DNA of 64,000 nucleotides, taken from sequence record PV231353.1, one strand, 5' to 3'. This document shows, piece by piece, positions 9,561 to 64,000 of the stretch (position 1 is its first letter; each line of letters opens with the position of its first letter). The notes beneath the pieces are model-generated. The model made no database searches and was not told the origin of the DNA. It saw only the letters and a program-made list of their open reading frames with translations. Both the position numbers and the translations under genes were made by a program.

Positions 9561-9565
9561 ACCAC

Positions 9566-9641: not shown

Positions 9642-9646
9642 ACAAC

Positions 9647-9722: not shown

Positions 9723-9724
9723 AT

Positions 9725-9800
9725 GCAAGTGTAGCTCAGTTGGTAGAGCAGCGGACCGATAATCCGCCTGTCCCTGGTTCGAGTCCAGGCATTTGCACCA
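9725..9800 (+). tRNA. tRNA-Ile(GAT)
   Basis: GCGGA-CCGATAA-TCCGC (C33); CCA. Confidence 0.92.
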
Positions 9801-9807
9801 ATTCTGA

Positions 9808-9882
9808 TGTGGCATAGCTCAGGGGTAGAGCGCGCGCTTGATAAGCGTGAGGTCGGGGGTTCGAAGCCCTCTGCCACTACCA
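9808..9882 (+). tRNA. tRNA-Ile(GAT), second copy
   Basis: CGCGC-TTGATAA-GCGTG; CCA. Confidence 0.92.
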
Positions 9883-9915
9883 GTTTCCAGGCCGGCGGAG
9901 ATGCGCCGAACCTGA

Positions 9916-9991
9916 TGGCGTTTAGCATAGTGGGAGTGCAGGGGTGTCACATACCTCGATCGAACTGGTTCGATTCCAGTAACGCCAACCA
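9916..9991 (+). tRNA. tRNA-Val(CAC)
   Basis: GGGGT-GTCACAT-ACCTC; acceptor TGGCGTT/AACGCCA; CCA. Confidence 0.88.
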
Positions 9992-9996
9992 AACGT

Positions 9997-10070
9997 TGAG
10001 GGTTCGTCTAACGGTAGGACGGCTGGGTCTGGTCCAGCTAATCTAGGTTCGAGTCCTAGCCCCTCATCCA
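9997..10070 (+). tRNA. tRNA-Gln(CTG)
   Basis: GCTGG-GTCTGGT-CCAGC; CCA. Confidence 0.9.
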
Positions 10071-10078
10071 AATACTGT

Positions 10079-10154
10079 TCAGGGTTAGTTTAGCTGGTAA
10101 AACACTGGGTTTTGGCCCCGGCGTCGCTAGGTTCGAAGCCTGCACCCTGATCCA
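10079..10154 (+). tRNA. tRNA-Gln(TTG)
   Basis: CTGGG-TTTTGGC-CCCGG; bulged T stem; CCA. Confidence 0.88.
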
Positions 10155-10165
10155 TTTGAGTTTAT

Positions 10166-10240
10166 TCCAGTCAATGCACAAGGTGTGCAGCGGCACTGTT
10201 AATGCCTGTGAGCCCGGTTCGATTCCGGGGTCTGGAGCCA
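10166..10240 (+). tRNA. tRNA-Asn(GTT)
   Basis: GGCA-CTGTTAA-TGCC; GCCA end. Confidence 0.9.
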
Positions 10241-10266
10241 ACACGCCGGCCTCGGCCGGCACATGC

Positions 10267-10350
10267 GCCCTGGTAACCGAGGGGGATTACGAGATCCCTT
10301 AGTCGTAGCAGGAGTTGAAAAGGGTGGTTCAAATCCACTCCAGGGTGCCA
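10267..10350 (+). tRNA. Non-canonical tRNA-Arg(ACG)-like
   Basis: Acceptor GCCCTGG/CCAGGGT-G-CCA; T arm GGTGG-TTCAAAT-CCACT; anticodon arm becomes GGGA-TTACGAA-TCCC if the G at 10293 is removed; D arm nearly absent; long V region. Confidence 0.55.
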
Positions 10351-10357
10351 AATTCAT

Positions 10358-10440
10358 AGCGCGCAGGCCGAGCAGGATTATCGTCAGGCGTCGCCCTCCG
10401 AAGGCGAAGAGGCCCGGTTCGAGTCCGGGGCGCGCTGCCA
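10358..10440 (+). tRNA. tRNA-Arg(CCG), enlarged D region
   Basis: TCGCC-CTCCGAA-GGCGA; acceptor AGCGCGC/GCGCGCT; GCCA. Confidence 0.85.
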
Positions 10441-10443
10441 TTC

Positions 10444-10522
10444 GCGCAGGTAGCTCAACGGACCCAGAGCGGCCGTCTTCTACACGGAAGGTTGGGGGTT
10501 CGAGATCCCTCCCTGCGCGCCA
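10444..10522 (+). tRNA. tRNA-Arg(TCT)
   Basis: CCGT-CTTCTAC-ACGG; T-loop TTCGAGAT (one extra G); GCCA. Confidence 0.9.
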
Positions 10523-49970: not shown

Positions 49971-51107
49971 CTACTCCTCGTCCGCCTTCTGAGCACCCTT
50001 TTCAGAGATGTTCAGGCGACCGTGGCCTTCGCCTTCCCTCATGTAGTCTTCGATGTTGAGACCATTTTCCGCCAGCGCTTCGCGAACGGCGTTGGTGTCG
50101 AGGGTCTTGCGACCCTTGATCCACGAGATGGAGGCCTTGATCTTTCCGTCTGCCGACTTCGCGACCCGGACTCCGGTGTTGTGGAACCACTGCTTCAGAG
50201 CCTCCGAAGCAGCCTTGTGTCCCACTTCGGCCGCCTTTTTCGCAGCCGAGGCGCACCGCTCCTCGGCCACAAGGCGTTCGAATTCTTCCAGGATCGGCGC
50301 GGGCGTCGTCTTCGAGTTGGCCTCGCCGGTCGTGGGGGTGGACTTCTTGGTCGTCTGGGCGCAGGCGACCTTGAACGGGCAGTAGGTGCAGGAGCTATCG
50401 ATCTTGCCCTCGGCCATGACCTCCGCCGGGTCCTTGATGGCGAAGACGTCGCGCGCGCGCTGCATGGCGACGTCGAACACCTTCTGGTCGAAGGGGACGA
50501 CGAACACCTCGATGTCGTCGAAGAACGAAGCGTCGATGTAGATGATGACCGCGTAGTTGGGCCGCCAGGACGAAAGCTGGCGCGTCAATCCCATCTGGAC
50601 GATCGTCTGACCCCTATGGATGCTTTTCTCCTCCTTCAGGTTCACCCGAGGATCGATCGACTTGATCTCCAGGTTGAAGCAGTTGGAGGGGTGCTCGACG
50701 TCCTTGCGCGAGCCGCCCAGGGAGGCGATGCCGTACTCGGCCAGGGCGTCATCGTCGGCGTAGATCACCAGACCGTCGGGCGTGGCCGACAGGGGCGCTT
50801 CGGGCGAGATGAGGGTCCGCTGGTTCGCGCCGCCCCAGATCAACTGGGCGTCGCGGGTCAGGTTCTCGGTGATCCACTTCACGCCGGGCTCGACGAAGTA
50901 GTTCTCGATCAGGTCGCCGCGTTGCAGCGCGCCCCAGGACTGCTCGTAGTCCGGGTCCTTCGGGGCGCCGTGCTTGGCGAACCACACCTTGCGCAGGCAC
51001 CCGAACGCCTCCGAGGCGCCGACCGACTTGCTGCGGTCGTGCTTCCACACCTTCTGGTGGGCCTCGACGTATTCGTTAAACCCGGATTTGAAGTTGATCG
51101 CAGCCAT
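49971..51107 (-). CDS. PD-(D/E)XK (Cas4/RecB-like) exonuclease
   Basis: ASE..GCLR, ATPDG, LEIKS, QTIVQM, C.YCPF...C motifs. Confidence 0.88.
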   Translation of the reverse strand: MAAINFKSGFNEYVEAHQKVWKHDRSKSVGASEAFGCLRKVWFAKHGAPKDPDYEQSWGALQRGDLIENYFVEPGVKWITENLTRDAQLIWGGANQRTLISPEAPLSATPDGLVIYADDDALAEYGIASLGGSRKDVEHPSNCFNLEIKSIDPRVNLKEEKSIHRGQTIVQMGLTRQLSSWRPNYAVIIYIDASFFDDIEVFVVPFDQKVFDVAMQRARDVFAIKDPAEVMAEGKIDSSCTYCPFKVACAQTTKKSTPTTGEANSKTTPAPILEEFERLVAEERCASAAKKAAEVGHKAASEALKQWFHNTGVRVAKSADGKIKASISWIKGRKTLDTNAVREALAENGLNIEDYMREGEGHGRLNISEKGAQKADEE

Positions 51108-51178
51108 CGCGCACCGTCACATTTCTCTGGTATCGTGACTTGGGTTCATCCAGGGTCACGGGCCTGGGGCGCGGCGCG

Positions 51179-51262
51179 CTAGGGGCGATCGAGCTTGTTA
51201 CGCAGCCAGATCAGGAAGGCGGCCCCGATGCAGCCAACGGCGATCCAAAAGAGGTCGGTCAC
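51179..51262 (-). CDS. 27-aa single-TM peptide MTDLFWIAVGCIGAAFLIWLRNKLDRP
   Basis: GTGA overlap with the exonuclease stop; hydrophobic core and basic tail. Confidence 0.55.
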   Translation of the reverse strand: MTDLFWIAVGCIGAAFLIWLRNKLDRP

Positions 51263-51888
51263 GCGGCCTTCTCCCGCATCTTGGCCGCGACCATGTCTTC
51301 CATGGCGTAGTAGCAGCGCTGGGTGGCGAGGACGTCGGCGATAGCGGTGTGGGCGTCCTCGAACCCCTCGCCGATCAGGTGCTTGTGGAGGTCGATCAGC
51401 TTGGGCTTGCGATAGCCGCCCTGCTTGGAGGGCAGCTTCATCAGCGGCATGCCGGCCAGGATCGTGTCGAACATCGCCTTGCCCGCGAACGGGTCGGCGT
51501 CCGGGCGGCCCAGGACGCGCCGCACGACGTTGGTCATGATCTTGTTGTCGAAGGAGACGTGATTGTGCCCGACGACCAAGTCGGCGACCGCGACCATGTC
51601 GCAGAAGGCTTCCACGACCAGGACCTCGGTGATCCCGATCTGCTCGGAAAGCTCGGGGCTGATCCCGTGGATGGCGGCGGCGCCGCCCTTGCCGTCCTTG
51701 CCGACGGTCCAGTCTTGCAGCACGTTGGCCGGCACGTCGCCGACCCGCAGGATCATGTCCAGGCGCTGCATTTCCCGGCGCTCCGGATTGGCCAGGATCG
51801 CCCCGAGTTGAACAACGCGAGGCTGCTCGTCCAGGGAGCGTTTGCTGTCCGGAAAGCCGGTGGTTTCGGTGTCGTAGAAAAGGATCAT
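51259..51888 (-). CDS. DEDDh 3'-5' exonuclease (DnaQ-like)
   Basis: FYDTETTG, VGHNH.SFD, AH.A.ADV motifs. Confidence 0.92.
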   Translation of the reverse strand: MILFYDTETTGFPDSKRSLDEQPRVVQLGAILANPERREMQRLDMILRVGDVPANVLQDWTVGKDGKGGAAAIHGISPELSEQIGITEVLVVEAFCDMVAVADLVVGHNHVSFDNKIMTNVVRRVLGRPDADPFAGKAMFDTILAGMPLMKLPSKQGGYRKPKLIDLHKHLIGEGFEDAHTAIADVLATQRCYYAMEDMVAAKMREKAA

Positions 51889-51936
51889 CGGGCGATCTCG
51901 TTCGGGAGTGTCTTGTTAACCAAGTTCCGGATGGGT

Positions 51937-51973
51937 GTCAAGATTCACGACATAGAAAGTCAGGAATCGCGAC
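51937..51973 (-). promoter_or_regulatory. Tandem motif copies (perfect at 51937-51951, variant at 51959-51973)
   Basis: GTCGTGAATCTTGACA-N15-GTTAAC on the - strand. Confidence 0.75.
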
Positions 51974-52634
51974 TTGCGGCCTCGGTCTTGATGATCTCGT
52001 AGATGCGCTGGGCCGACAGGCTGTAGGCCTCGGCCAGTTGCGACACCGGCTCGCCCTTGGCGTAGCAGTCGGCGATCTCGGCGTAGAAGCGCTTCTTGGC
52101 CTCGGCGCGGCGCAGCTTGGCCTCGGGCGCGTGGCGGTCGATGAAGCGATAGATCGCGATCCGGGTGACCCCATAGTCCTTGGCGATCAGAGGCACCGGC
52201 GCGTAGGCGGCGTAATCTTCGATGATGGTGGCGGCGTGGTCGGCGAGGGCCATGGGAATCTCCAGGGTGTCGAGGGCGCGGTCGATCACCACCGCCGCGC
52301 GCTTGGAAGGATGCTTGGTCAGGAAGCCGCAGGGGCGGCCGGCGGCGTAGGGCGGCTCCAGGCCCGCGCAGAGGTACTGGTCGGCGGTCGGGTCCAGCCG
52401 CCAGCCCTCGCGCGTCCCCAGCCACCAGTGCGTCCCGCCGTCGGGGTCGGGAGCGACCATGCCGCGCCAGACGCTGGCCTTGGCGTCGAGCAGATGCCAG
52501 AGCGCCTCGGCGGCGACATAGCAGTGCCCGGCGGTCGGGTTCGAAGCCGTGTACGCGGAACGATAGGGCTCGCGCAGAAGCTCGGGCGTGAGGCCGGCCT
52601 GGACGGCGCTAAGGGATTGGAGCGGCGACAGCAT
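51960..52634 (-). CDS. Cys/His (YunG-like) domain fused in frame to a Mor-like double HTH; internal start at 52253
   Basis: TGATG overlap with the polymerase stop; GHCYV...GGTHWW; C-terminal VSQLAEAYSLSAQRIYEII; GGAG SD 6 nt before ATG 52253. Confidence 0.75.
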   Translation of the reverse strand: MLSPLQSLSAVQAGLTPELLREPYRSAYTASNPTAGHCYVAAEALWHLLDAKASVWRGMVAPDPDGGTHWWLGTREGWRLDPTADQYLCAGLEPPYAAGRPCGFLTKHPSKRAAVVIDRALDTLEIPMALADHAATIIEDYAAYAPVPLIAKDYGVTRIAIYRFIDRHAPEAKLRRAEAKKRFYAEIADCYAKGEPVSQLAEAYSLSAQRIYEIIKTEAASRDS

Positions 52635-54880
52635 CAGTGCGTCTCCGCCCAGGTCCGGCCCCACTTGACGTCGACATCGACCGGCAGGCGGAAGTCGAAC
52701 CGCTCGCCCGCCTCCTTCGCCGCGTCGACGATGTTGCGGCGGCAGATTTCCTTGACCGCCGCATCGTCGCGCACCGCCACCTGCATTTCGTCGTGGACCC
52801 AGGCCAGGACGGCGTAGTCGCCGTGCCAGCCGTGGACCAGCCCGTCGTCCTCGTTGAAGGTCTCGAAGTTGACGCACCAGCCCTTGGCGATCGTGGCGCC
52901 GGCGCCCTGGAGCTTGGTGTTCAGCGCCGAGTGCTTGGCCCGCACGAAGAGATGGCGGCCGTCGAGGGCGTCGACATAGCCGCGCTTGGCTTCGCGCTGC
53001 ACCGACTTGACCACCTGTTGCAGGGCCGGGATGCGCGTCATGATCCGCCGGCGCATTTCCGAGCCCAGGGCCTTGGCCTTGGCGACGTTCATGGTCAGCG
53101 ACGGGTCGACGGTGCAGCCCAGCTTGTAGTCCTGGGCGCCGTAGATCATGGCGTAGATGAAGGTCTTGGCGGTGTCGCGCGACTCCATCTCCATGGCCGC
53201 TTGGTGGACGCCGTGGACGTCGCCGTCGAGCACGATCTTGCCGTACTGCCCGTTGTCGAACTCCGCCATGAAGTGGGCCAGACAGCGCAGTTCGATACCG
53301 GCTTGGTCGGCGCCCATCAGGGTCCAGCCCTCGGGGACGTAGAAGAGGTCGCGGCAGTCCCAGCCGTGATCGCCCTCGCGGCCCTTCATCAGGACCTTCT
53401 TGGTGACCACCTCGCCCTTTTCGTTCAGGGTGAACTCGCCCTCGGGCGTCAGCACCGGGCGGCCCCGGATTTGCTTGCCGTCCGGGCCGAGCAACGGGAT
53501 CGTCTTGGCCTCGTCCTTCCATTGCGGCGGCGACTTGAAGACGACGCGCGGGACCTGGGCGATGTTGGGGTTGGAGTGCGAGGCCCGGTTGGTCACCGTG
53601 CCGCCGACATTGACGCGGCCGTGAATTTTGCCGTCGCCGTTCCACTCCTCGCACTTGACCAGCCAGCCGTTCTTGCCGTCGACCAACTGCCCCAGGCGCT
53701 TCTTGTAGTAGAAGATTTCCGCCAGGGTCTCGCAGATCGGGATCACCAGCTTCTTGGTGTTCTCGTCCTCGGCCTTGGCCAGATCGCGCAGCACTTCGTC
53801 GTCCACCACCGGCGAGCCGGTTTCGGTGAACTCCTGGGGTTGCCAGCCATAGACCTTGGTCAAGCGGTCGATGATCTGCGGACGCGAGTTGGGGTTGAAC
53901 TCGGTGATCTTGACCGGGCAAAACGGCGCGCCGGCGGTGCGGTCGCCCTTCATCGGGTCCTTGTACTTGACATCGCGCGTCGGGACCGTCACCTCCGCCC
54001 AGTGCTCGCGGCTGTCGTCCTCGCCGAATTCGGGGCGCGGCTTGTAGGCGACCTGATCCTTCTCGGGCTTGCCGGTCTCGGGCGAGGTGTAGGTGGTCGA
54101 CTTGTGGCGCTTGAGCCACTTGCCCGGCACCCACCAGGAGCCGAAGTGCGCGATCGCCTCGTCCGACATCTTGGTGTGCGCCGTGCGCAGTTCTTCTTCC
54201 AGGCGACGCGCTCGCTCGCGGTGGAACGGGAAGCCGTTGCGCTGCACCCGCTCCATCATGTCGTGGATCATGTGTTCGAGCGTGATCGCGGTCTTGGACC
54301 ACGGCCGGCTCTCGATCTTGCGCCACAGGGCCTCGGTGACCTCGACGTCCTGGATCGCGTAGTCTTCCATGTCCTGGTTCCAGGACCCCCAGACGTACTT
54401 GCTGATCTCGGCCTTGTCGGTGATGCCCTTGGCCTTGGCCTCTTCCTCGGCCACGTCGGCGTAGTCGCCCTTGGGGAAGCCCAGGCGCTGGCCCCAGGCG
54501 CCCAGTTCGTGCGAGCCGATGTAGCCGCCCCAGAGGTCGCCGCGCTTCCACATCCGGAAGTCGTCGTCCTTGAGGTCGGCGAACAGCATGCGCGTCATCA
54601 CCAGGGTGTCGCGGATGATCCCCTGGGGATTGAACTTGTTGCCATAGACCTTCCACAGGGCCTCGCAGTCGAAGCCGATGATGTTGTGGCCGATCAGCAT
54701 GTCGGCGTCGTTCAGCATCGCGACGCCTTCGAGGATGTTGTCCTCGCGCTTGTTGCGGTGGAAGACCCAACGCTGACGGGTGTCGGCGTCCTTGATCACC
54801 AGGATGTGGATGCGCGTCAGTTGCAGCAGCAGCCCATCGGTTTCAAGGTCGAACAGGAGCCGGCGCTTACGGAGCTTCAT
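52634..54880 (-). CDS. Family A DNA polymerase (T7-like) with 3'-5' exonuclease
   Basis: FDLETDG, GHNIIGFD, Y.IQDV, GADQAGIELR, R..AKTFIYAMIYGA, QGAGA, VHDE motifs. Confidence 0.96.
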   Translation of the reverse strand: MKLRKRRLLFDLETDGLLLQLTRIHILVIKDADTRQRWVFHRNKREDNILEGVAMLNDADMLIGHNIIGFDCEALWKVYGNKFNPQGIIRDTLVMTRMLFADLKDDDFRMWKRGDLWGGYIGSHELGAWGQRLGFPKGDYADVAEEEAKAKGITDKAEISKYVWGSWNQDMEDYAIQDVEVTEALWRKIESRPWSKTAITLEHMIHDMMERVQRNGFPFHRERARRLEEELRTAHTKMSDEAIAHFGSWWVPGKWLKRHKSTTYTSPETGKPEKDQVAYKPRPEFGEDDSREHWAEVTVPTRDVKYKDPMKGDRTAGAPFCPVKITEFNPNSRPQIIDRLTKVYGWQPQEFTETGSPVVDDEVLRDLAKAEDENTKKLVIPICETLAEIFYYKKRLGQLVDGKNGWLVKCEEWNGDGKIHGRVNVGGTVTNRASHSNPNIAQVPRVVFKSPPQWKDEAKTIPLLGPDGKQIRGRPVLTPEGEFTLNEKGEVVTKKVLMKGREGDHGWDCRDLFYVPEGWTLMGADQAGIELRCLAHFMAEFDNGQYGKIVLDGDVHGVHQAAMEMESRDTAKTFIYAMIYGAQDYKLGCTVDPSLTMNVAKAKALGSEMRRRIMTRIPALQQVVKSVQREAKRGYVDALDGRHLFVRAKHSALNTKLQGAGATIAKGWCVNFETFNEDDGLVHGWHGDYAVLAWVHDEMQVAVRDDAAVKEICRRNIVDAAKEAGERFDFRLPVDVDVKWGRTWAETH

Positions 54881-55925
54881 GGAGCACCTTGAGGATTTGA
54901 TCGCCGATCCAGTCCACCATCGGGACGATCAGGCTGTTGCCGACGATGGTCCGGCGCTCGGTGTCCGAGAGCCCTTCGATCGCGGTGTGGCCGACGGGCA
55001 TGCCCATCAGGCGCTCGTACTCGGACACGGTGTGATTGCGGATGCGCCAGTCCTCGCCTTCCTTGACGAGCAGCATGGCGACGCTGGAGCCGCCGCCGGC
55101 CGTGCGCAGGCAGTTGGCGATTACGCCGCGCTCTTCGATTTGCTGGTCGGGGCGTCCGCGAACAGCGAGGGATCGAGCCCGTGGGACAGGGCGGCCGTCA
55201 ATTCCGGCGACAAGGTCCGACCGGCTCGGATCGCGTTGTTCAGGAGGGTCAAACGCCGGGACGGGCTCATGTACAATCCGGCGGGGATCGATTCCGGAGC
55301 GTCGAGTACACGCGACAAGCACAAGCCGGGGGCGGGACTGGGGGATTCCGAACTGGGGACCGTCGAAGACCGTCCAGGCGATCGCGCGGCGCGGTCCCAG
55401 CACATAACCACAGTCCGGCCACCGATTCCCTGCCGTGTCGTCGTCACCTTCGGGCTTTCCGTAGGGATAGAGGGGTTCTCGCTCGCCGGCGAGGCGTCCG
55501 AGGAATTGTCCAAAGGCGTTGTCCTTGTTGGAGAGGAGCTTGACCACGTTCTCGAAGCAGAAGATCGGAGGATCGACCTCGTCGATCACCCGCAGGCCCG
55601 AAAGGGTCAGTTGTCCGCGCGGGTCGGCCAGACCCAGGCCCTTGCCAGCCTCGCTCCACGGCTGGCAGGGGAACGACGCCCACAGGACGTCGACCTTGCC
55701 CTCGTGGGGCGTGCCGTCGATCTGTTCGAGGTTCCCGAGGTTCGGGACGGCCTTCCAGTGCGTCTCCAGGAGACGGATCGGGGCCGAGGCGATCTCGCTG
55801 AAGAAGCGGGCCTTGCCGCCCTTCTTCTCCCACGCCACCGAGGGGACGTCGGCGCCGGAGCAAAGGGTCGCAAAGACCCACGGCGTGACGCCGGAGGCGT
55901 CCGCAGGGGAGGGGTTCGGGGACAT
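54867..55925 (-). CDS. DNA cytosine-5 methyltransferase
   Basis: FPCQPWS.AG catalytic motif, ENV, Q.RPR, E.ERLMG.P, GNS motifs. Confidence 0.92.
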   Translation of the reverse strand: MSPNPSPADASGVTPWVFATLCSGADVPSVAWEKKGGKARFFSEIASAPIRLLETHWKAVPNLGNLEQIDGTPHEGKVDVLWASFPCQPWSEAGKGLGLADPRGQLTLSGLRVIDEVDPPIFCFENVVKLLSNKDNAFGQFLGRLAGEREPLYPYGKPEGDDDTAGNRWPDCGYVLGPRRAIAWTVFDGPQFGIPQSRPRLVLVACTRRSGIDPRRIVHEPVPAFDPPEQRDPSRSDLVAGIDGRPVPRARSLAVRGRPDQQIEERGVIANCLRTAGGGSSVAMLLVKEGEDWRIRNHTVSEYERLMGMPVGHTAIEGLSDTERRTIVGNSLIVPMVDWIGDQILKVLHEAP

Positions 55926-55944
55926 GGCTCTATGGTTAACGGAT

Positions 55945-55962
55945 GTCGTGAATCACGTCAAG
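55945..55962. promoter_or_regulatory. Rearranged motif GTCGTGAATCACGTCAAG upstream of the C5 MTase
   Basis: On the - strand the TTGAC precedes the GATTC half-site. Confidence 0.45.
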
Positions 55963-55980
55963 AAATGTCGTCAACGACGA

Positions 55981-56769
55981 CTAATTCTTGTCGGCGGCGG
56001 GCTGACGCAGGCGCGCGTGCATGGCCTCGATCTCGTCGTCCGACAGCGGCCGGCGGCCCGTGGTCTTGACCTCGCCACGCCAGATGACGTCGGCGAGCTT
56101 GAGGAACGCCTTGGCGAGCTTCTGCTTGTCGGTGTGCCCGATCGCGCGCTGAAGGCCCTCGGGCCAGCGCGGCGGCAGGGCGTAGAAATACATCAGCCCC
56201 GGCCGGGTCCAGACGTCGACGGCGAAGTCGCCCGCCTGCCGCTTTCCCACCGCGAACGACTGGTCGCCCAGCATCGCGACGTTGTTCTCGTCGTAGTAGC
56301 CGATCCCCAGCCTGATCTTGTCGATCTCGCTGTCATAGGCCAGCCACAGGCAGCGCCCATCGCCCAGGGGGACGTTCTCGATCTCCCAGTCCTGGGGATG
56401 GCCCCAGACCGCGTCGTGGGCTTCGCGGATGGCGTCGGCCAGCATGCCGGTGATCGTCTTGGGCGAGACCGAATCCCCGACCACCAGGAACGAGCCGGGC
56501 TCGATCTCCAGGGTCTTGTCGACCCCGAAATGCTCGGCCAGCCGCCCGGCCTTGAACGAGAAGCCCTCGCGCTCGATGCGGTCGGCGATCTCGTAGGCGA
56601 ATCCCGGCTTGAGGTTGAGCGTCATCACGTGCGAGACGTTCAGCCCCGAGGCCGATTCATGCCCGAGCCCGATCTGGATCGAATGGGTCTCGGACGTCAC
56701 CAGGGCGTAGAGGAAGCCCCCGGAGGGCCGGGTCGGATAGGCGACCCGGCGGGAGAAGAGGAGGGTCAT
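55981..56769 (-). CDS. Hypothetical protein
   Basis: 262 aa; in operon order. Confidence 0.8.
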   Translation of the reverse strand: MTLLFSRRVAYPTRPSGGFLYALVTSETHSIQIGLGHESASGLNVSHVMTLNLKPGFAYEIADRIEREGFSFKAGRLAEHFGVDKTLEIEPGSFLVVGDSVSPKTITGMLADAIREAHDAVWGHPQDWEIENVPLGDGRCLWLAYDSEIDKIRLGIGYYDENNVAMLGDQSFAVGKRQAGDFAVDVWTRPGLMYFYALPPRWPEGLQRAIGHTDKQKLAKAFLKLADVIWRGEVKTTGRRPLSDDEIEAMHARLRQPAADKN

Positions 56770-56779
56770 GGGACCTCGC

Positions 56780-58484
56780 TTACAGGCGCCAGTGGCGGCC
56801 GTTGAAGGTGATCAGCGCCCGCTTGCCGTTCGGGTACTGCACGCAGTGGGTGTGCGCCCAGGACGAGGGGCCGGTGTTGTAGCCCATGTCCAGCTTCGAG
56901 GTCGTGCCGGTGTTGTAGGCGCTCTCGAAAATGCCGGGCGAGTGAGTGTGGCCAAACGTAGTCTTCGGGCCGATCTTGGCGAACTGCTGGATGTTGCCGC
57001 GCGAGCCGTTGGCGCCGTTGTGACCGTGGTTGGAGTGCTCGACCCCACCGACGACGCAGGATTCGTCCTCGCGCAGGAACTTCACGCCGTTGCAGTTCCA
57101 GACGTCGAAGGCGTTGGTCATCACCTCCTCGAAGATCGAGAAGTTCTTCTCGCCGGTCCGGATCGAGGCGTAGACCGCCCGCTGACAGGTGAGGAAGAAC
57201 TCGGCATTGACCGGGTCGGCGCGGTAGTCGGCCGTCTTCAGCCACTTGTTGAGCGCCAGATCGTGGTTGCTCTCAACCACCGTGACCTTCGAGTCCGGGG
57301 CCTGCCGACCCAGGATGGTCAGGAACATCGCCACCTCGCGCAGTTCCTGCTCGACGCTTTCGGAGCCCTTGACATAGAGCCGGAAGCGGTCGTGCGGATC
57401 GGCGATGTTGTGGTGGTTGCGCGCCCGGAAGTCGGAGACGTCGTGGACGAAGATGTGCTCGGGCCGCAGGACGTCGATCATCGACGGCGTCGCCACGCTG
57501 CCCCACACCCGGCTCCCGTCGGCCGAGCGCTGCTCGGTCGGGAAGAAGCCGAAGGTGGCGGCCGAGACCTCGGGATCGATCTGCGCCACGTGGACGTCGC
57601 CGGGCGTCAGGCAGGCCACGCGATGGCCCTCGGTGACCACGCCGTCCTTGACGAAGACGTCCAGGTCGTAGAACGAGCCATCGGTGTCGCCCAGAAGGTG
57701 GCGGCAGAAGAACTTGCCGTCCTCGTCGACCTCGACCAGCACCGCGCCCAACTGGTGGTGGAAGCTGGCCTTGATCCCGGCCTTCTTGGGGACGTAGTTC
57801 GGCTTGGTGACCGCGCCCGTCGTCATGATCTGCTTGGACGGGGTGTGCTTCATCGTCGGAACGCTGACGAGTTGCACCTTGGCGTGGGGGAAGATGCCCC
57901 AGCGCTCGCGGGTGTAGGAGTGGAAGCCCGACAGCGGATTCTCGGCCGTGGGGAGGGTGTTCATCTCGCCGCAGAAGTCGATCCGGTCGGCGATCCGCAC
58001 GCGCTCGGCGACGAGGTATTCCATCACCCGCTTGTGGAAGAACGCCGCGTGCTTGGCGTGGTCCTCGAACAGGCGCTTGGAGTAGGTGAAGCCAGCGATC
58101 ATGATCTCGCACGGCGCGTCCTGGCGCAGGTGCTCGGCATAGGCCTCCAGGTTGTCGACGAACTCCTCGTGGATGTGCGTCGAGATCCTGGGCCGAGGAC
58201 AGGATGAACCGCCGGCGCCCGGTGGTCTCATCCACCGGCACGGTCCGGGCGGCGGGCGCCGGGCGGTGCGACAGCGGGTCCTTGCGCATCGAGTAGAGGC
58301 GGTTCTGGAGCGTCGTGCGCTTGACGCTGTACTTGCGCGAGAACGCCCGTTGACCGCCGGCCTTCTTGACCATCGCGTTCAGTTCTTCCGGCGACACCGA
58401 GTAGATGTCGAACGGACCCTCGGCCGGCAGGGCGGCCTTGGGCTTCTTGCCCGCCTTGGAAGCGTGTTCGAACTCAGCCGGCAT
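56780..58484 (-). CDS. HTH + calcineurin-like metallophosphoesterase-type protein, split by a 1-nt insertion at 58184
   Basis: N-part MPAEFEH...RRFILSSAQD (frame of 57273..58685) joins STHIHEEF... (frame of 56780..58231) if one base is removed; GDVH, HD..D, SNHD, HGH.G and GHTHS motifs. Confidence 0.8.
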
Positions 58485-59175
58485 AGAGAAGCTCCGGTTT
58501 GGCGCTGACCGGCTTGGACCACGACCAGACGTACCAAGCATAGGCGAAGCGCGGGGCGCCCTTGGTGCCGGCGATCCAGCGGGGGCGGTGACGAAGGGTG
58601 ACCTTCGCGGTGAAGGCGGGGTGATCGAACAGGTCCGCGCGCGAGCGCGCCGCGTCCCATTCGTGGCGGCAGAGGAAGGCCACAAGGCCCTGGTCGGCCT
58701 CCATCAGGTCCAGCGCGTGGCGCGCGGCGCGCTCGGCGTCCTTGCCGTAGGGCGGGTTGGTGACGATCGCGTCCGGGCGCGGCGGCAGCGGCGTGTTCTT
58801 GCGCTCCTCGCCTTTCTCGTCGACAACCGTCTCGGGGCGGGCCTTCAGCGCGCCCAGGCGGTCGAGGTCGGCCGGTGTCAGCTTGAAGAAGTCCTCGACC
58901 GCGTCGACCTCGAAGCCCTCGTAGCGGTGGATGTCCGTGGCGAGGACCTCCTGCACGAAGGGCTTGAGCGGCGTGGCGATGGCGCCGTTGCCGGCGAAGG
59001 GCTCCCAGGCGAAGAACGGGGCGAAGTCATCGCCCAGGGCCTCGATCAGGGCGTCGAAGGCCGGCCGAGGAGTCGGGTAAAAGTCCAGCGGGGTCCTGGC
59101 ATATCCGGAGGCGCCCAGCATGGAGGGGTCTTTGCGACCAGCATCGGAGAGAGACATGGTCGTGAGGGATGTCAT
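58474..59175 (-). CDS. Amino (N6-A/N4-C) DNA methyltransferase
   Basis: DFYPTP, WEPFAGNG, TDI and IVTNPPY motifs; start may be ATG 59157. Confidence 0.88.
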   Translation of the reverse strand: MTSLTTMSLSDAGRKDPSMLGASGYARTPLDFYPTPRPAFDALIEALGDDFAPFFAWEPFAGNGAIATPLKPFVQEVLATDIHRYEGFEVDAVEDFFKLTPADLDRLGALKARPETVVDEKGEERKNTPLPPRPDAIVTNPPYGKDAERAARHALDLMEADQGLVAFLCRHEWDAARSRADLFDHPAFTAKVTLRHRPRWIAGTKGAPRFAYAWYVWSWSKPVSAKPELLYAG

Positions 59176-59189
59176 GGTTAACGAAGGGT

Positions 59190-59204
59190 GTCAAGATTCA
59201 CGAC
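59190..59204 (-). promoter_or_regulatory. GTCGTGAATCTTGAC motif, MTase promoter
   Basis: Perfect copy on the - strand. Confidence 0.8.
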
Positions 59205-59205
59205 A

Positions 59206-59233
59206 TTGACTGTCGTGACGCAGCACGTTAATC
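59206..59233 (+). promoter_or_regulatory. Divergent sigma70-type promoter
   Basis: TTGACT-N15-GTTAATC, back-to-back with the motif copy. Confidence 0.65.
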
Positions 59234-59237
59234 AGGA

Positions 59238-59899
59238 GGCAACGGGCCGTCCTTCTGCATTAGCCCCGCCGTCGCGCCTTCCAGGCGGCACGGGCCGGGA
59301 CGGTGGTTGGTGACGAGCAGGCCGAGGCAGCGGCGGGCGAGTCGAAGGAGAACCCGGCGAGCGGCGGAAGGCGTCGTTGACGCCCTCGGACTCGACAAGC
59401 ACGGGGTGATGCCGGAAATCACCGCGATCGCGCGGACGTCTGGACGTTGCTAGGCGTAAGGCAGGCCTGCCGAGAAGTGGAAACGGCCGGGGCGGGCGGG
59501 ACTTGATCTCGTCCGCCTTTCCGCCTAAGCTTCCCTCATTGCAGGCGCAGCACCGCCCTTCGCTAACGGCCCCGAGGGGTACGCAAGGGCTAGAAGCCTT
59601 GCCTGGGACAGGACTGCCTCTGATCCAGGAACGCCCTGGGCCGCGTAGCGCCCATGACGCGAACGCCGGCCGAGAATGGGCGACTAGGCGTGACGGCGGC
59701 CAGAGGCCGCAGCGACATTCCAAGCTCGATAGAGCGATCGGCGGGCCGGGGCGAAAGCCCTGTTTCGAGAGCCAGGGCAACCCGTCATAGGTCCTGGTCG
59801 GGCGACGAGGCAGCAAGTCCCGCGAACGGAGCCTCTGAGGCGGCGTCACCAAGATGCAGCAGACGCAAAAAGGCCCCGATCGCGAGATCGGGGCCTTTT
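59238..59899 (+). ncRNA. Candidate ~630-660-nt structured non-coding RNA
   Basis: Own promoter and terminator; many hairpins; only mutually overlapping shadow ORFs. Confidence 0.5.
59867..59899. terminator. Bidirectional intrinsic terminator
   Basis: AAAAAGGCCCCGATC-GCGA-GATCGGGGCCTTTT. Confidence 0.92.
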
Positions 59900-59904
59900 C
59901 ATGT

Positions 59905-59993
59905 TGGAGCTTCGGGAGGGACTCGAACCCTCATAGGTGTTCCCACCAGCAGAGATTTGCAATCCCGCGCCTAACCTCTCAGTCCACCGAAGC
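59905..59993 (-). tRNA. tRNA-Cys(GCA) with long variable arm
   Basis: Reverse complement: GCTTCGG/CCGAAGC-T-CCA, GGGA-TTGCAAA-TCTC, V arm GGTG-GGAA-CACC. Confidence 0.88.
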
Positions 59994-59995
59994 AC

Positions 59996-60028
59996 AAAAG
60001 GACCTCGACGCCCGAAGGCCCGAGGTCC
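59996..60028 (-). terminator. Intrinsic terminator (- strand) upstream of tRNA-Cys
   Basis: GGACCTCG...CGAGGTCC-TTTT on the - strand. Confidence 0.7.
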
Positions 60029-60177
60029 GATCCGTAACCAGGGGAGGGCCGTAGCTGTCCCCTGACCCTGAACGACAGGTGGCGGGCTTGGTCGTCATCC
60101 CGTCAGGCTCGCGGCGCCGCTCGCCTGAACCGCCGATATGCCACGAGGGCAGTGATCCGCAGGTCCCCATAAATAGC

Positions 60178-60218
60178 AAAAAGGCCACGATCCGCGAGGA
60201 CCGTGGCCTTTTCGTTTT
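60178..60218. terminator. Bidirectional terminator closing the large RNA
   Basis: AAAAAGGCCACGATC-CGCGA-GGACCGTGGCCTTTT. Confidence 0.88.
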
Positions 60219-60219
60219 C

Positions 60220-61092
60220 CGATGGGCTGAGACTACACCCATCAGCAATCCCGCTTCGAGGATTATTCCCCAGGTGCGACCCCAGGTATTCCCTCGACGT
60301 CCACCAGACCCCTTGCGGTAGTCCAGTCCGAGATCATCGCCGCCGTTCTTGCGCACCCCGAAGGGATTGCGGGTCTGGCGTTTGACCCATCATGGCGAAC
60401 TACTCGACAGTTCCTTCCCCGCTGGGCTTGCGACCCACTCACCGGCGCTAACCGGCTGACGAAGCTCTTCCTATCGACACCTCGCGGGCTTGCGACCCTT
60501 GAGATGACTCCGTTACCCGAAGGCCGGAGCATTTGGCGACTTACGTCCGCCACTGGACCAGTCTTTGCGTTTTTCATCGAAGCGGGGATTGAACCCGCGA
60601 CCGACAGCTTAAGAGGCTGTTGCACTACCACTGTGCTATTCGCAAACCCACCAAGACGTGCTGGTCCAGTTGTTCCCAGAGCTTTTGACCCCAGAAATGC
60701 AACACGCCTCATATCTTTCGCCTTGCGGGCTACTCGACTGCTCTTCAGGACCCCGTCTCCCCCAACCTTTCGGCCAGGATGCCCAGCACCCCTCGAACTG
60801 AAGCAAAGCTCTTCACCGCGAAGTGTCGAACCCTGCAACCCAAACGGTTATCCGTACTCCCTAGACACGCTTGCACGGGATAGTCCGCTTGCGACGGACT
60901 GGCGGTTAAAGCCTCGGAGTTACCCCGGCCCCGCCTTGTCTCCCACGGTCTTCAGGTCTATCCCCTTTTGCAAGAGGCGGCCAGCTTCCCAGCCCGGACC
61001 CGTCGGCTTCCTCTGTCCTCTTGCGAGGTCGGGCGGCCTATGGGAGACCGTCCCTGTCACCCCGTCGCCGGGGCTTTCGTCAGAAGCGACGA
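60220..61092 (-). ncRNA. Large ornate ncRNA (~870 nt), GOLLD-like, with embedded tRNA-like domain
   Basis: Consensus promoter and terminator; about ten GNRA-capped hairpins; repeated GTCGAGTAG and GAAGAGC modules; 3' pseudoknot. Family name is inferred, not searched. Confidence 0.72.
60575..60645 (-). tRNA. tRNA-Lys(CTT)-like domain inside the large RNA, without CCA
   Basis: GCAC-AGTGGTA-GTGC, ACAGC-CTCTTAA-GCTGT, GCGGG-TTCAATC-CCCGC; only 4-bp acceptor; no CCA. Confidence 0.75.
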
Positions 61093-61096
61093 TGAC

Positions 61097-61125
61097 GTTC
61101 TAGCGACAGCCAAAGTCGTCGTCAA
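61097..61125 (-). promoter_or_regulatory. Consensus sigma70 promoter of the large RNA
   Basis: TTGACG-N15-GCTAGAAC on the - strand. Confidence 0.85.
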
Positions 61126-61181
61126 CGACTTTTTTCGTCTCGCCCTCGAAATTTTTCGACAGTCGTGGGTGACGACAGTGC

Positions 61182-61209
61182 TTGACATTCTCGGAGCCGC
61201 GTGCTAGGT
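61182..61209 (+). promoter_or_regulatory. Sigma70 promoter of tmRNA (divergent)
   Basis: TTGACA-N15-GCTAGGT. Confidence 0.8.
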
Positions 61210-61211
61210 GT

Positions 61212-61590
61212 CGGAAATCGTTGTAATTCGGACAACGGAACTGGCGGCAAGACAGGGGTGCGAATCCCCTCGCCTCCACCATCGACGCCCGGCGCTGGGA
61301 GTACGCGACTCCTGGGCAGGGAGTGTTACCCTGGCGGGCTGCGGCCCGAGCCAAAGGTAGCCGGGCGTCGTTGATGGGGGCGACTAGCTTTCGATTGGCG
61401 CTCGGGACTGAAAGACGCAACGGTGGGTGACCTCCACATCGGCTTGCCGGTGATCGGGTCAGGCAACAGTAAATGTCGCCGCCAATGACAACGACGTCGT
61501 GGCTTTCGCCTCGGCTCGTGAAGCCATCGCCGCCTAATAAGCGGTAGAGGAGCCCGCCGGGAGCTTGGCAACAGAATCCCGGCAACCCCC
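61212..61590 (+). ncRNA. ssrA: Circularly permuted two-piece tmRNA
   Basis: Acceptor piece ends ...AGGGG-TGCGAAT-CCCCT-CGCCTCC-A-CCA (61281). Coding piece starts GGGGGCG (61376), giving G3:U70. Tag frame ANDNDVVAFASAREAIAA-TAA-TAA (61481-61540); GGCAACAGAA near the 3' end. Confidence 0.93.
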
Positions 61591-61718
61591 TTTCGCAGGC
61601 GGGAACACCAACAGGCGATCTGTCGGGCGACCGATTTCCGATCCGTGTTCCCGTCTTCGAAAGGTGGTCAGGCCTACCCTCTTGGTGTGCTATCCAAGGG
61701 TCTGGCCACTTTACAGAA

Positions 61719-61797
61719 CGCGGGGTAGAGGAGTCCGGTTGTCCTCGTCTGGCTCATAACCAGGAGATCGTGGGTTCAAATCCCACTCCCGCTCCCA
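61719..61797 (+). tRNA. tRNA-Met(CAT), initiator-like
   Basis: CGCGGGG with C1xU72 mismatch; TCTGG-CTCATAA-CCAGG; CCA. Confidence 0.9.
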
Positions 61798-62075
61798 ATG
61801 CGAACGCCGGCTGTTGAGAACGACGGCGTGACAAGCTCGGAGAGAACGAGCACTCCAGTCCGGGGTATGAGGCCGGACTAGCGGACGCCGTAGCGATTGC
61901 AGGCGTGACACCCGGAGATAGCGGGACCGATTTTCCAGGCTCCATGCCCGGCGCGTCGGGGGCGGACAGTTAATCCGCCCGGCGTCAGAGGATGAGGCTA
62001 GTTCTCGGCGATGAAGCTGCGCGCGCAGTGAGAAAGCCAGGGCATGGCGCTTGGAAAGTCGGTTCGCGGTTCGTC

Positions 62076-62168
62076 CGCTACGAGATGGAGATGTCGCCGG
62101 TTCGAGTCCGGCAGGTCCCCCAAAAGGAGGCCTTAGCTCAGTCGGTAGAGCGCTCCTATCCCACCTTT
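62076..62168 (+). ncRNA. YrlA-type Y-RNA-like circularly permuted tRNA mimic
   Basis: Order is stem strand, T arm (GCCGG-TTCGAGT-CCGGC), acceptor stem closed by CAAAA loop, D arm (GCTC-AGTCGGTA-GAGC), complementary stem strand, TTT. Confidence 0.7.
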
Positions 62169-62253
62169 GGTACGGTGGCTCGACAGGTAAGGCATCGGCC
62201 TCATAAGCCGAGGGTTCGTCCCAATCCTGGTTCAAATCCAGGTCGTACCTCCA
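62169..62253 (+). tRNA. tRNA(CAT), elongator Met or Ile2, with long variable arm
   Basis: GGTACGG/TCGTACC-T-CCA; TCGGC-CTCATAA-GCCGA; V arm GGG-TTCGT-CCC. Confidence 0.88.
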
Positions 62254-62327
62254 AATTGACGCTTGACCCCAGGCCGCAGGCTGCTAAGCTTCCCCGGTCG
62301 GGATCGTCCCGCGTCCTTTCCAAGGTC

Positions 62328-62358
62328 AAGCCCCCGGAGCCTCGCTTCGGGGGCTTTT
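62328..62358 (+). terminator. Intrinsic terminator closing the RNA island
   Basis: AAGCCCCCGGAG-CCTCG-CTTCGGGGGCTT-TT. Confidence 0.85.
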
Positions 62359-62711
62359 CAGTTCTTGACCACCCGCAGGCGCCGGGCCTCGTTGGCGCGC
62401 TCCTCCGCCGCCACGCGCGAGACGTCTTGCAGATGCGCCTTGGCGATCAGGTCGGGCGCGCCCACGGCCCGGAAGGGCACCTTGACGGAGAGGTCAACAT
62501 AGCGCCGCAAGAGCGGCTCGAACTCCAGGCCTCGCGCCTGGGCGATCCGCGACAGTGCGCCGGCGACGATCGCCACGACCAGGACGTTGGTCGGTGTCTC
62601 CTTGGTCAGGGTCCAGATGCCCGGTATAGACTGCCCAGGATGAAGTTCCTGCCGCGCCACGTCATCGGCGGCGGCGCGGAAGAGGTTCTCGTAAGGGACG
62701 TTTTCGAGCAT
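62358..62711 (-). CDS. Hypothetical protein
   Basis: ATG 62711 within track ORF 62358..62903. Confidence 0.75.
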   Translation of the reverse strand: MLENVPYENLFRAAADDVARQELHPGQSIPGIWTLTKETPTNVLVVAIVAGALSRIAQARGLEFEPLLRRYVDLSVKVPFRAVGAPDLIAKAHLQDVSRVAAEERANEARRLRVVKN

Positions 62712-62790
62712 ACGACAACGATAGCGATCTTTTGCCGCCTGTCTACCCTCTACTCTTGATAGTAGTAAAGCCCCGATTTCAACATAAGAG

Positions 62791-63177
62791 CTAAAGCCGT
62801 CCGCCGTAATAGTCCCGCCACATTCCCTCCCAATAGTCGATGTGCTTCTCGGTGCAGTCCGGGCAATACCGACGGTCCCGGTTGGGGTCCTCGCCCTTGC
62901 CATCCCAGTGGTAGCAGGTCATTGAGCCGACCATCCCCAGGCGCCAGAACGTCCCGCAGTGTTCGCATCCCCCAAGGGCGATGTTCTGCATCGTCCGGTG
63001 GTGGTTCCACTTGCAGAGCCAGTTGAACCAGAGTTCATAATAGAGGGCGTCGCGGATGCTGCTGTACTGGGTGAGGCGGACCTGAACGACCTTGCGCCGG
63101 CCGTTAGGCTTCAGGTCGCGGTCATAGGTCGGCCTGTAGAAGACCTTGATCTTCGGGAACCAGCGGCGCTTCTTCAC
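62791..63177 (-). CDS. Hypothetical protein with two CxxC pairs (possible Zn finger)
   Basis: GTGA overlap with the helicase stop; CEHC and CPDC. Confidence 0.7.
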   Translation of the reverse strand: MKKRRWFPKIKVFYRPTYDRDLKPNGRRKVVQVRLTQYSSIRDALYYELWFNWLCKWNHHRTMQNIALGGCEHCGTFWRLGMVGSMTCYHWDGKGEDPNRDRRYCPDCTEKHIDYWEGMWRDYYGGRL

Positions 63178-63998
63178 GTGTCCATGACCCTTGCGATATT
63201 GTCCTCCTTCTCCTTGGCGGCCTGGGCGATGCGCGCGTCGAGCGAGCCGTTCGCCACCAGGAAGAAGCACATGATTTTCTCGGCCGTCTGCCCGATCCGG
63301 CAGGCGCGGTCCTCGGCCTGCTCGATCAGGGTCGGCGTCCAGTCCCCCTCGGCGAACGCCACGTCGTGCGCCCGCGTCATGGTGAAGCCTACACCGGCGG
63401 CCTGGAGGTTGCAAACGATGACCCGGCAGGACTCGTCGTCCTGGAACTTGTCGACCTGAAGCTGGCGCTTGTTGACGGGGGTCCCGCCATAGATCATCGC
63501 CGGATTGTAATCCGCCAGCGCCTCGGCGAGCGCCTTGACGACGTCGGAGTGGTAGGCGAACAGGATCAGCTTGTCGCCGCCGTCGAGGAAGTTCTTGACC
63601 CAGGGAATGATCGCCGGGAGCTTGGCCATCCCCAGTTCACGGCGGACGGCGGCGATCTCCTCGAAGAGCACCGCCACGGCCGGCGGCGCGAGCCCCAGCA
63701 CGGCGGCGGCGTAGTCGAGATTGAGCGCCCGCGAGTTGGGCTTGTCAGGATCACCGTCCTGTCCCACCGCCTTGTCGAAGCCGTAGCGCTGGGCCGTCTC
63801 CAGGATCGACAGACCCAGGCGGATGTCGCGCTGGTCCTCGGTCTCGTTCTCGCCGGCCAGCACCGTGGCCTCGTAGAGCTTCAGCGCCTGGGAAAGCTCG
63901 TCCTCGCGCGCCACGACCTCGCGGATTTCCGGGCTGTCGAGGAGGACGATCTGGCGGAACTTCGGCGGAAGCTCGGGTAGCACCTCGCGCTTGTTCCG
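63174..63998 (-). CDS. SNF2/HARP-like helicase, C-terminal part (5'-partial)
   Basis: K.EVL.ELP, KLILFA.H, R...VD.FQ, AAGVGFT.T.A, WTP....QAEDR..RIGQ motifs. Confidence 0.93.
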   Translation of the reverse strand, partial: RNKREVLPELPPKFRQIVLLDSPEIREVVAREDELSQALKLYEATVLAGENETEDQRDIRLGLSILETAQRYGFDKAVGQDGDPDKPNSRALNLDYAAAVLGLAPPAVAVLFEEIAAVRRELGMAKLPAIIPWVKNFLDGGDKLILFAYHSDVVKALAEALADYNPAMIYGGTPVNKRQLQVDKFQDDESCRVIVCNLQAAGVGFTMTRAHDVAFAEGDWTPTLIEQAEDRACRIGQTAEKIMCFFLVANGSLDARIAQAAKEKEDNIARVMDT

Positions 63999-64000
63999 CC

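Follow-up and report, generated by a model that had tools for sequence, protein, structure and literature searches.

Caulobacter is the genus in which the two-piece tmRNA and the role of this molecule in the cell cycle were worked out; the two-piece form was reportedly described by Keiler, Shapiro and Williams in 2000. Mutants of Caulobacter in ssrA, smpB, sspB, and clpX exist. The phage phiCbK is a classic Caulobacter phage and, together with RBC57 and further relatives, belongs to the giant siphophages of the subfamily Dolichocephalovirinae, the host of which is Caulobacter vibrioides. The standing of phiCbK as a classic phage combined with the history of tmRNA research in Caulobacter makes the phage copy of the gene a convenient one for asking why phages carry tmRNAs.

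The presence of tmRNA genes in phages has been documented before. Buchholz et al. applied ARAGORN to 18,146 phage genomes and obtained 402 with a tmRNA; among the 133 unique structures of phage tmRNAs, 53 were two-piece (Buchholz et al. 2022, PMC9004378). Among the entries of their Table S1 considered here, permuted tmRNAs are given for phiCbK, CcrSwift, CcrKarma, CcrMagneto, CcrSC, CcrBL9, and CcrPW, as well as for Lacusarx, pelagimyophages, and Melnitz, while copies from Poindextervirus and Colossus do not occur in the first of the two parts of this table. A tmRNA database published in 2025 holds 79 phage sequences taken from RefSeq viruses (PMC11915505). Using Rfam, Gill et al. (2012) found no RNA other than tRNAs in phiCbK-like phages, and a genome announcement of 2026 counted one tmRNA in phage Shash. 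The GenBank and RefSeq records of Caulobacter phages that were found, including those of RBC57 and NC_019405, have no feature at the tmRNA locus, and the record of Brevundimonas phage Bajun (ON529858) is the only one with a tmRNA feature. As the phiCbK gene already appears in a published table, the tmRNA of RBC57 is a missing annotation rather than a discovery: the phage tmRNA gene is already known and nothing is changed in what is known of tmRNA. In the literature searched, no data on expression, processing, charging, or tagging were found for tmRNAs of phiCbK-like phages, and neither tRNA nor tmRNA is mentioned in the RNA-seq study of phiCbK (McLaughlin et al. 2023, PMC10688885).

The stretch of DNA analyzed here, referred to as the window, comprises 64,000 nucleotides of record PV231353.1 (Caulobacter phage RBC57); its positions 50000-64000 match record positions 174000-188000 with 100 % identity. 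Over this part of the window, phiCbK, Karma, Swift, Magneto, and the Ccr phages are 96-97 % identical to RBC57. An earlier reading of the letters of the window, hereafter the sequence-only reading, had proposed that it encodes a phage-borne, permuted two-piece tmRNA with a tag of its own. This was borne out by ARAGORN and the Rfam model RF04321, by the presence of the gene in 12 relatives, by covariation, and by the preservation of the tag frame. Anatomy, conservation, covariation, reading frame, and relatedness to the host gene all support the view that RBC57 very probably carries a working, circularly permuted ssrA gene. The features of the locus are the following:

61182-61210, + strand: promoter-like element, TTGACA (61182-61187) followed by GCTAGGTG (61203-61210), seen in the alignment; putative function
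61219-61281, + strand: acceptor piece, delimited by the RF04321 alignment, in which the T arm, P2a, and P2b covary
61219-61223, + strand: strand of helix P2a in the acceptor piece
61244-61246 and 61248-61250, + strand: strands of helix P2b in the acceptor piece
61254-61270, + strand: T arm of the acceptor piece, with the loop UGCGAAU
61282-61375, + strand: intervening segment of 94 nt, placed by minimum free energy (MFE) folding and covariation; presumably removed on maturation, as in the known family
61376-61586, + strand: coding piece; its 3' end is approximate and set where the host alpha_tmRNA model ends, after GGCAACAGAA
61395-61422, + strand: coding-piece strands of the inter-piece helices, UUG (61395-61397), CGC (61399-61401), and CAACG (61418-61422)
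61423-61461, + strand: pseudoknot 1, GUGG/CCAC and UGACC/GGUCA, with an inserted hairpin CGGC-UU-GCCG
61470-61477, + strand: resume context UAAAU and probable resume codon GUC (61475-61477), from conservation and the parallel in the host
61475-61534, + strand: tag frame VAANDNDVVAFASAREAIAA, followed by UAA UAA (61535-61540), from ARAGORN and the conservation of the frame in 13 phages
61529-61545, + strand: stop-presenting hairpin GCCGC/GCGGU with the stop codons in its loop, from covariation
61550-61583, + strand: 3' pseudoknot, GCCGGGA/UCCCGGC and GAGC/GCUU around GGCAACAGAA, a motif shared with the host
61586-61602, + strand: hairpin CCCCCU-UUCGC-AGGCGGG past the coding piece, from conservation and pairing
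61719-61797 and 62169-62253, + strand (that of the tmRNA): two tRNA-Met genes called by ARAGORN
62340-62352, + strand: first downstream terminator-like hairpin, past both tRNA-Met genes

ARAGORN called a permuted tmRNA at 61189-61628 with the tag VAANDNDVVAFASAREAIAA followed by two stops, and the Rfam model tmRNA_permuted (RF04321; gathering score 47 bits) matched 61219-61537 over the full model (1-213) with 71.4 bits and an E value of 1e-11. The tmRNAs of the phiCbK group, Lacusarx, the pelagimyophages, and Melnitz were, in the published entries considered, likewise all detected by ARAGORN as permuted. ARAGORN or the Rfam alpha-tmRNA model had been suggested as a check on the sequence-only reading. 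ARAGORN and RF04321 gave the expected result; the alpha_tmRNA model RF01849 did not, as RBC57 had no match at its gathering threshold of 50 bits. Nor was a match to this model listed under an E-value threshold, a mode that hides overlapping matches of the same clan and that kept, for RBC57, a beta_tmRNA match of 31 bits. Bajun (57.4 bits) and Colossus (53.5 bits) narrowly passed the RF01849 threshold, and the host tmRNA reached 245 bits. The difference between 245 bits for the host and less than 50 bits for RBC57 indicates that the phage gene is very diverged.

The gene is circularly permuted: its CCA end (61279-61281) lies upstream of G1 (61376), and ARAGORN flags it as such. The 3' strand of the acceptor stem, CGCCUCC (61271-61277), is followed by the discriminator A (61278) and CCA, and its seven bases pair with the 5' strand GGGGGCG (61376-61382), located downstream of it. 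The third pair, G61378:U61275, is the G3:U70 pair, which is invariant in 13 of 13 aligned phages. A 7-bp acceptor, G3:U70, and a discriminator A, the features of alanine identity, are all present. Both the order of the pieces, with the acceptor piece ending in CCA at 61281 ahead of a coding piece that starts at 61376, and the 7-bp alanine acceptor had been correctly described in the sequence-only reading. Acceptor pair 5:68 switches from C:G to G:C in three phages, and four pair types occur at the first position of the T arm. The tmRNA of C. vibrioides (crescentus) has the same order of acceptor piece, intervening segment, and coding piece, and it shares with the phage RNA the T arm GGGUGCGAUUCCC (type GGGUGCGAWUCCC), an encoded ACCA end, and G3:U70. 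At the end of the acceptor piece, Rogue and BL64 read CCACCACCA, with one CCA extra (loci L005 and L006, about 1555-1570).

The fold was examined in an alignment of 13 phage sequences, using a structure that combined the pairs of the Rfam alignment with the folded intervening segment and with pseudoknots drawn by eye. The fraction of paired cells was 88.2 %, against 77.0 % in shuffles, none of 500 of which reached the observed value; controls with slid partners gave 39-46 %. Both sides were changed in 36 of the 89 pairs, and covariation backs the acceptor stem, the T arm, the inter-piece helices, the closing stem of the intervening segment, and pseudoknot 1. The covariation of these helices points to selection on the fold. 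The two pieces are joined by P2a, which is 96.7 % paired and shows a change from U:A to C:G in 5 of the 13 phages, and by P2b, which is 100 % paired and in which A:U is replaced by C:G, U:A, or G:C, with both sides changed. Part of the fold is ambiguous because the 5' strand of P2a also fits a local 6-bp hairpin (61219-61224/61232-61237) that is 89 % paired and partly covarying. The two arrangements are mutually exclusive, and the same U-to-C change is followed by both. The local 5' hairpin may be an alternative fold adopted before the two pieces associate.

The intervening segment is closed by an 11-bp stem, in which CGACGCCCGGC (61283-61293) pairs with GCCGGGCGUCG (61360-61370), as had been noticed from the sequence: the 94-nt segment and its closing stem were both recovered at the positions first given, with 11 pairs that covary. 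The stem holds three to four hairpins, and a UUGAU leader lies ahead of G1. When folded alone, the segment had an MFE of -55 kcal/mol (z = -3.8 versus shuffles). All 11 pairs of the closing stem are changed on both sides among the aligned phages, in which the stem is 95.6 % paired. The host segment, by comparison, is only 30 nt long and contains a 5-bp hairpin.

A closing stem is, however, no peculiarity of RBC57, a notion that was ruled out by comparison with other permuted tmRNAs. Viral alpha-type tmRNAs have intervening segments of 24 to 242 nt, and long, stem-closed segments are the rule in other viral permuted tmRNAs, as in RBC57. Among 102 distinct intervening segments of alpha-type permuted tmRNAs, 95 have an outermost predicted helix that stretches from one end of the segment to the other; in viral copies, this helix typically has 10-13 bp. 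The closing stem can therefore be regarded as a general device, one that, judging from the predicted folds, probably draws the acceptor strands together for processing. The possibility that the segment belongs to a known RNA family was also considered, an example being the glutamine riboswitch that accompanies the tmRNA of Melnitz; a permissive Rfam search returned only noise (E > 1), and RBC57, in contrast to Melnitz, has no riboswitch of this type that is detectable with Rfam.

In the coding piece, pseudoknot 1 lies between P2 and the tag, as it does in Caulobacter, the host tmRNA also having inter-piece P2 helices and UAAAU just before the resume codon. Pseudoknot 1 was drawn by eye from the sequence; its stem 2 (UGACC/GGUCA) is 100 % paired across the phages having it, stem 1 is 83 % paired, and the inserted hairpin, which is additional to what is seen in the host, covaries from G:C to A:U. 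In the hairpin that presents the stop codons, pairing amounts to 89 %, and both sides of one pair are changed; the corresponding hairpin of Colossus differs and reads GGCC-UAAC-GGCC. Pairing in the 3' pseudoknot is 77-87 %, again with both sides changed in places; the lineages of Rogue, BL10, and Bajun have an insertion in this region. The 3' pseudoknot contains the motif GGCAACAGAAUCCC, which the phage coding piece and the host tmRNA have in common. Beyond it, CUUUCGCAGG of the hairpin at 61586-61602 (86 % paired) is kept in most phages.

The tag frame of RBC57 runs from GUC GCC GCC AAU GAC AAC to GCC AUC GCC GCC UAA UAA. One open frame of 15, 17, 20, or 21 codons starts from AAAUGUC, a motif that is invariant in all 13 phages, and every tag ends with Ala-Ala followed by UAA. 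The insertions and deletions by which the tags differ (2, 3, or 6 codons) comprise whole codons and leave the frame intact. These whole-codon changes in length, together with the location of the stops in a hairpin loop, point to selection on translation. Read from GUC, the tags are:

RBC57 and BL57 (phiCbK by ARAGORN): VAANDNDVVAFASAREAIAA
Karma and Swift (Magneto by ARAGORN): VADNDNDVVAFASAREAIAA
BL10: VASNDNDVVAYASAREAIAA
Rogue, RBC8, Bajun, and the uncultured contig L129: VAANDNAPFAVREAIAA
Colossus: VNDNDAPVMEQLLAA
CcrPW: VNDNDAPVMEQRLAA
CcrBL9 and CcrSC: VNAANDNDVVVSTMTSVKLAA

No start codon precedes the tag; its context and its Ala-Ala and stop end are conserved, and GUC is the codon at which we infer that translation resumes. 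RBC57 reads GUAAAU|GUC GCC GCC AAU GAC AAC where the host reads CUAAAU|GCG AAC GAU AAC UUC, so that the five bases upstream of GUC (UAAAU) are identical to the five ahead of the host resume codon. These five positions are where SmpB makes contact, and they determine the frame (PMC8012679). Colossus, with CAAAU|GUC AAC GAC AAC, is an exact positional parallel to the host, and GUC is the only codon with an initial G common to all phages, at the same place as GCG in the host. Resumption at the first GCC is less likely, as Colossus, CcrPW, CcrBL9, and CcrSC have AAC directly after GUC; the second GCC is a less likely candidate as well, since Karma, Swift, and Magneto have GAC there. The UAAAU match, the parallel in Colossus, and the AAC and GAC codons of the relatives therefore favor GUC. 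Most tmRNA resume codons specify Ala; a Val codon would be unusual, which counts against this choice. On balance, comparison of the sequences makes GUC (61475-61477), the codon also called by ARAGORN, the most likely resume codon, and the tag added would be (A)VAANDNDVVAFASAREAIAA. The tag frame given in the sequence-only reading was retained. Its start was not: (A)VAANDNDVV..., two residues longer, is likely rather than (A)ANDNDVV.... That reading had itself flagged the resume codon as uncertain by one or two codons, and GUC lies two codons upstream of the start it gave.

The host gene used in these comparisons was obtained from 55 Caulobacter genomes via the back-translated host tag. It encodes ANDNFAEEFAVAA, the complete tag with the charged Ala being AANDNFAEEFAVAA, in agreement with the Caulobacter tag quoted beforehand. 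Phage and host tags have a start of the type A/V-(AA)NDN and an AA end in common, and the host, like the phage, has GGCAACAGAAUCCC in its 3' pseudoknot. They differ in length (20 codons in the phage, 13 in the host), in the middle of the tag, in the end (-IAA in the phage, -VAA in the host), and in the resume codon (probably GUC in the phage, GCG in the host).

The tag region of Bajun, from AAATGTC to GGTAGAGG, is nucleotide-identical to that of the Rogue group (L002, about 2500-2580; L005, about 1770-1850), while large differences separate its tRNA-like domain and intervening segment from those of that group. On the basis of these alignments, this suggests either an exchange of tag modules across host genera or a strong constraint at the RNA level.

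A blastn search of the phage collection showed the tmRNA locus to be present in 29 records, 28 from Caulobacter phages and one from a Brevundimonas phage; phiCbK and RBC57 are 99 % identical over the 501-bp query that holds it. All 12 relatives that were fetched carry a permuted tmRNA (RF04321, 69-90 bits) in a conserved position, flanked by a tRNA-Cys gene on one side and a pair of tRNA-Met genes on the other. These relatives span Shapirovirus, Poindextervirus, Colossusvirus, and one Brevundimonas phage, i.e., at least four phage genera; further lineages with the tmRNA are CcrBL9, CcrPW, CcrSC, and the uncultured contig L129. Among the fetched relatives, ARAGORN recovered only the copies of Shapirovirus and Bajun. 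It missed those of Poindextervirus (BL10, RBC8, RBC63, Rogue, and BL64) and of Colossus, which reach 82-90 bits with Rfam (L003-L006, L008, and L013; about 1503-1821 in each). As ARAGORN is blind to these copies, surveys based on it under-count phage tmRNAs. Pattern searches of IMG/VR gave at least 120 matches for phage-borne permuted tmRNAs, and in about 26 of the 40 loci run through ARAGORN a permuted tmRNA with a tag was called. Permuted tmRNAs borne by phages are common. In BL64, an annotated "hypothetical protein" gene, BL64_127c, overlaps the tmRNA gene in antisense orientation (L006, 1419-1760, - strand) and is probably a false gene call.

The 75-nt tRNA-like core of the phage RNA is about 55 % identical to that of the host in an ungapped comparison, the longest identical runs, as judged by eye, being 8 nt. 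A tree was built from 118 columns for 96 distinct tRNA-like domains, with Caulobacteraceae as the only alphaproteobacterial hosts; in it, eight phage sequences form a clade (support 91/83) on a long branch. This clade joins the sequences of Caulobacteraceae, 24 in number (85/85), and is set apart from a further 59 viral sequences, which have ...ALAA tags; the marine phage tmRNAs, with their ...ALAA tags, are a group separate from RBC57. That the phage sequences group with Caulobacteraceae and yet are very diverged argues for an old event. The sequence comparison supports, but does not prove, one old capture from a Caulobacter-like host that would have been followed by fast divergence.

The sequence TTGACA of the promoter-like element is invariant in the 13 aligned phage loci and is followed, in the Caulobacter phages, by a G(C/G)TA(G/C)(G/A) block (GCTAGGTG-like) 14-17 nt downstream. 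A scan with an E. coli-type promoter consensus gave no match for the tmRNA, TTGACA and the block being visible in the alignment only. The consensus of Caulobacter sigma-73 promoters is TTGACgS-N10-14-GCtANAWC, which we take the element at 61182-61210 to resemble. A terminator-like hairpin (61112-61132) lies upstream of the promoter-like element, and no terminator-like site is present on the + strand between 61132 and 62340. As no + strand terminator-like site separates them, the tmRNA and the two tRNA-Met genes would form one transcription unit and are probably co-transcribed.

Processing, charging, tagging, and a benefit to the phage can be inferred for this gene. A conserved TTGACA-type promoter of its own would drive its transcription, and the two downstream tRNA-Met genes would probably be part of the same transcript; in the folded precursor, the 11-bp stem of the intervening segment would bring the two acceptor strands together. 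Host tRNA-processing enzymes could then act on the precursor, RNase P cutting before G61376 and 3' trimming proceeding back to CCA61281. Two products would result, about 63 nt (acceptor piece) and about 210 nt (coding piece) in length, which the acceptor stem and the P2 helices would keep attached to each other. Host AlaRS would charge the molecule via G3:U70, and host SmpB and EF-Tu would deliver it to stalled ribosomes; the identity of the UAAAU context to that of the host counts for the use of host SmpB. Translation would resume, most likely at GUC, with the addition of (A)VAANDNDVVAFASAREAIAA, the ...IAA-COOH end of which should send the tagged proteins to ClpXP. The phage could benefit from more ribosome recycling, and perhaps from amino-acid recycling, as infection generates truncated mRNAs, and the tmRNA would complement its roughly 28 tRNAs. 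Rescue independent of the cell-cycle control of the host had been envisaged from the sequence. A phage smpB is not mentioned by Gill et al. (2012), and, as no phage SmpB has been reported, such independence would be partial at best.

The tmRNA might, in addition to working, have been selected for its altered tag, with, e.g., a weaker or stronger SspB-assisted delivery to ClpXP, the use of another protease, or a slower turnover as a consequence; a change in SspB binding or proteolysis rate had also been put forward in the sequence-only reading. The tags of 15-21 codons, against 13 in the host, speak for this, as do their middle parts, which are wholly different between phage lineages and from the host while AANDN or NDN and the terminal AA are kept. 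So does the stretch from REAIAA to the stops, which is nucleotide-identical in Shapirovirus, Poindextervirus, and Bajun although the tRNA-like domain and intervening segment differ. This last identity can, however, also be explained by an RNA constraint on the stop hairpin or by recombination, and tag middles vary in bacteria generally; selection for an altered tag is a possibility to be held with considerable doubt.

A broader proposal is that of one ssrA capture that was kept across Dolichocephalovirinae (Shapirovirus, Poindextervirus, Colossusvirus, the CcrBL9 group, and Brevundimonas phage Bajun) and has by now become a phage-specific rescue system with its own tag fate, processing step, and RNA island. 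In this full form it is unlikely. If true, the longer tag with its Val start would give tagged proteins a different fate, e.g., in their use of SspB or ClpXP, and a step of processing or regulation that is absent in the host would come with the enlarged, structured intervening segment or with the alternative 5' hairpin. The tmRNA, the GOLLD RNA next to it, and the tRNA genes would then constitute an RNA island for the takeover of translation.

It is very improbable that the RNA is a decoy or inhibitor of host trans-translation that competes for SmpB or ribosomes and yields no productive tagging. A precedent reported for such a role is DS6A, a mycobacteriophage whose tmRNA-like RNA has no tag (cited in PMC11915505), and the authors of the Lacusarx study speculated that the tmRNA of their phage counteracts tagging by the host. 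The DS6A RNA and the RBC57 tmRNA are both phage-borne and both have a tRNA-like domain. The former inhibits host tmRNA and has no tag frame, whereas the frame of RBC57 is complete and has been conserved in 13 phages through indels of whole codons, with its Ala-Ala end and stops. Pseudoknot 1 and a resume context of the host type are present as well, and all three would be unnecessary in a decoy, which counts against this role.

That the locus is a mere relic, either a piece of host ssrA taken up as or near an attachment site or a decaying pseudogene, can practically be dismissed: ssrA is a frequent site of phage integration, and phages carry fragments of the gene (Buchholz et al. 2022, PMC9004378), and the relatives Senya and Shash are reported to have integrases, but the gene is of full length with both pieces present, its tRNA-like core has only about 55 % identity to the host and no identical run beyond 8 nt, it has been kept across at least four phage genera, and the covariation of its helices indicates selection on the fold, which largely refutes this explanation, also in the form of an attachment-site fragment.

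Several other RNAs are encoded in the neighborhood. A GOLLD RNA (RF02032, 169 bits, threshold 150) is located at 60224-60710 on the - strand and adjoins the tmRNA on the opposite strand. It is unannotated in the records of RBC57, phiCbK, Karma, Swift, Magneto, and BL57, and a literature search returned no paper tying GOLLD to Caulobacter phages. Its position between tRNA-Cys and the tmRNA is particular to the Shapirovirus relatives; it is absent from that place in Poindextervirus, Colossus, and Bajun. A tRNA gene (60573-60646, - strand) is nested within the GOLLD RNA. A comparison of this tRNA in the window with its counterparts in two relatives (L009, 922-995; L007, 788-861) showed no difference between phages outside 5 nt of the anticodon loop (100 % identity elsewhere). 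The anticodon is CUU (Lys) in RBC57 and Karma (and, by ARAGORN, in Swift and Magneto) and UCC (Gly) in phiCbK and BL57. Judged from these sequences, the anticodon of the nested tRNA has been exchanged while the body of the molecule has stayed the same. Farther away in the window, at 6295-10522 on the + strand, ARAGORN called an array of 24 tRNA genes, which contains isoacceptor pairs for Pro, Lys, Gln, Gly, and Val, three tRNAs for Leu, and three of Ile type, among which one has the unusual anticodon AAU.
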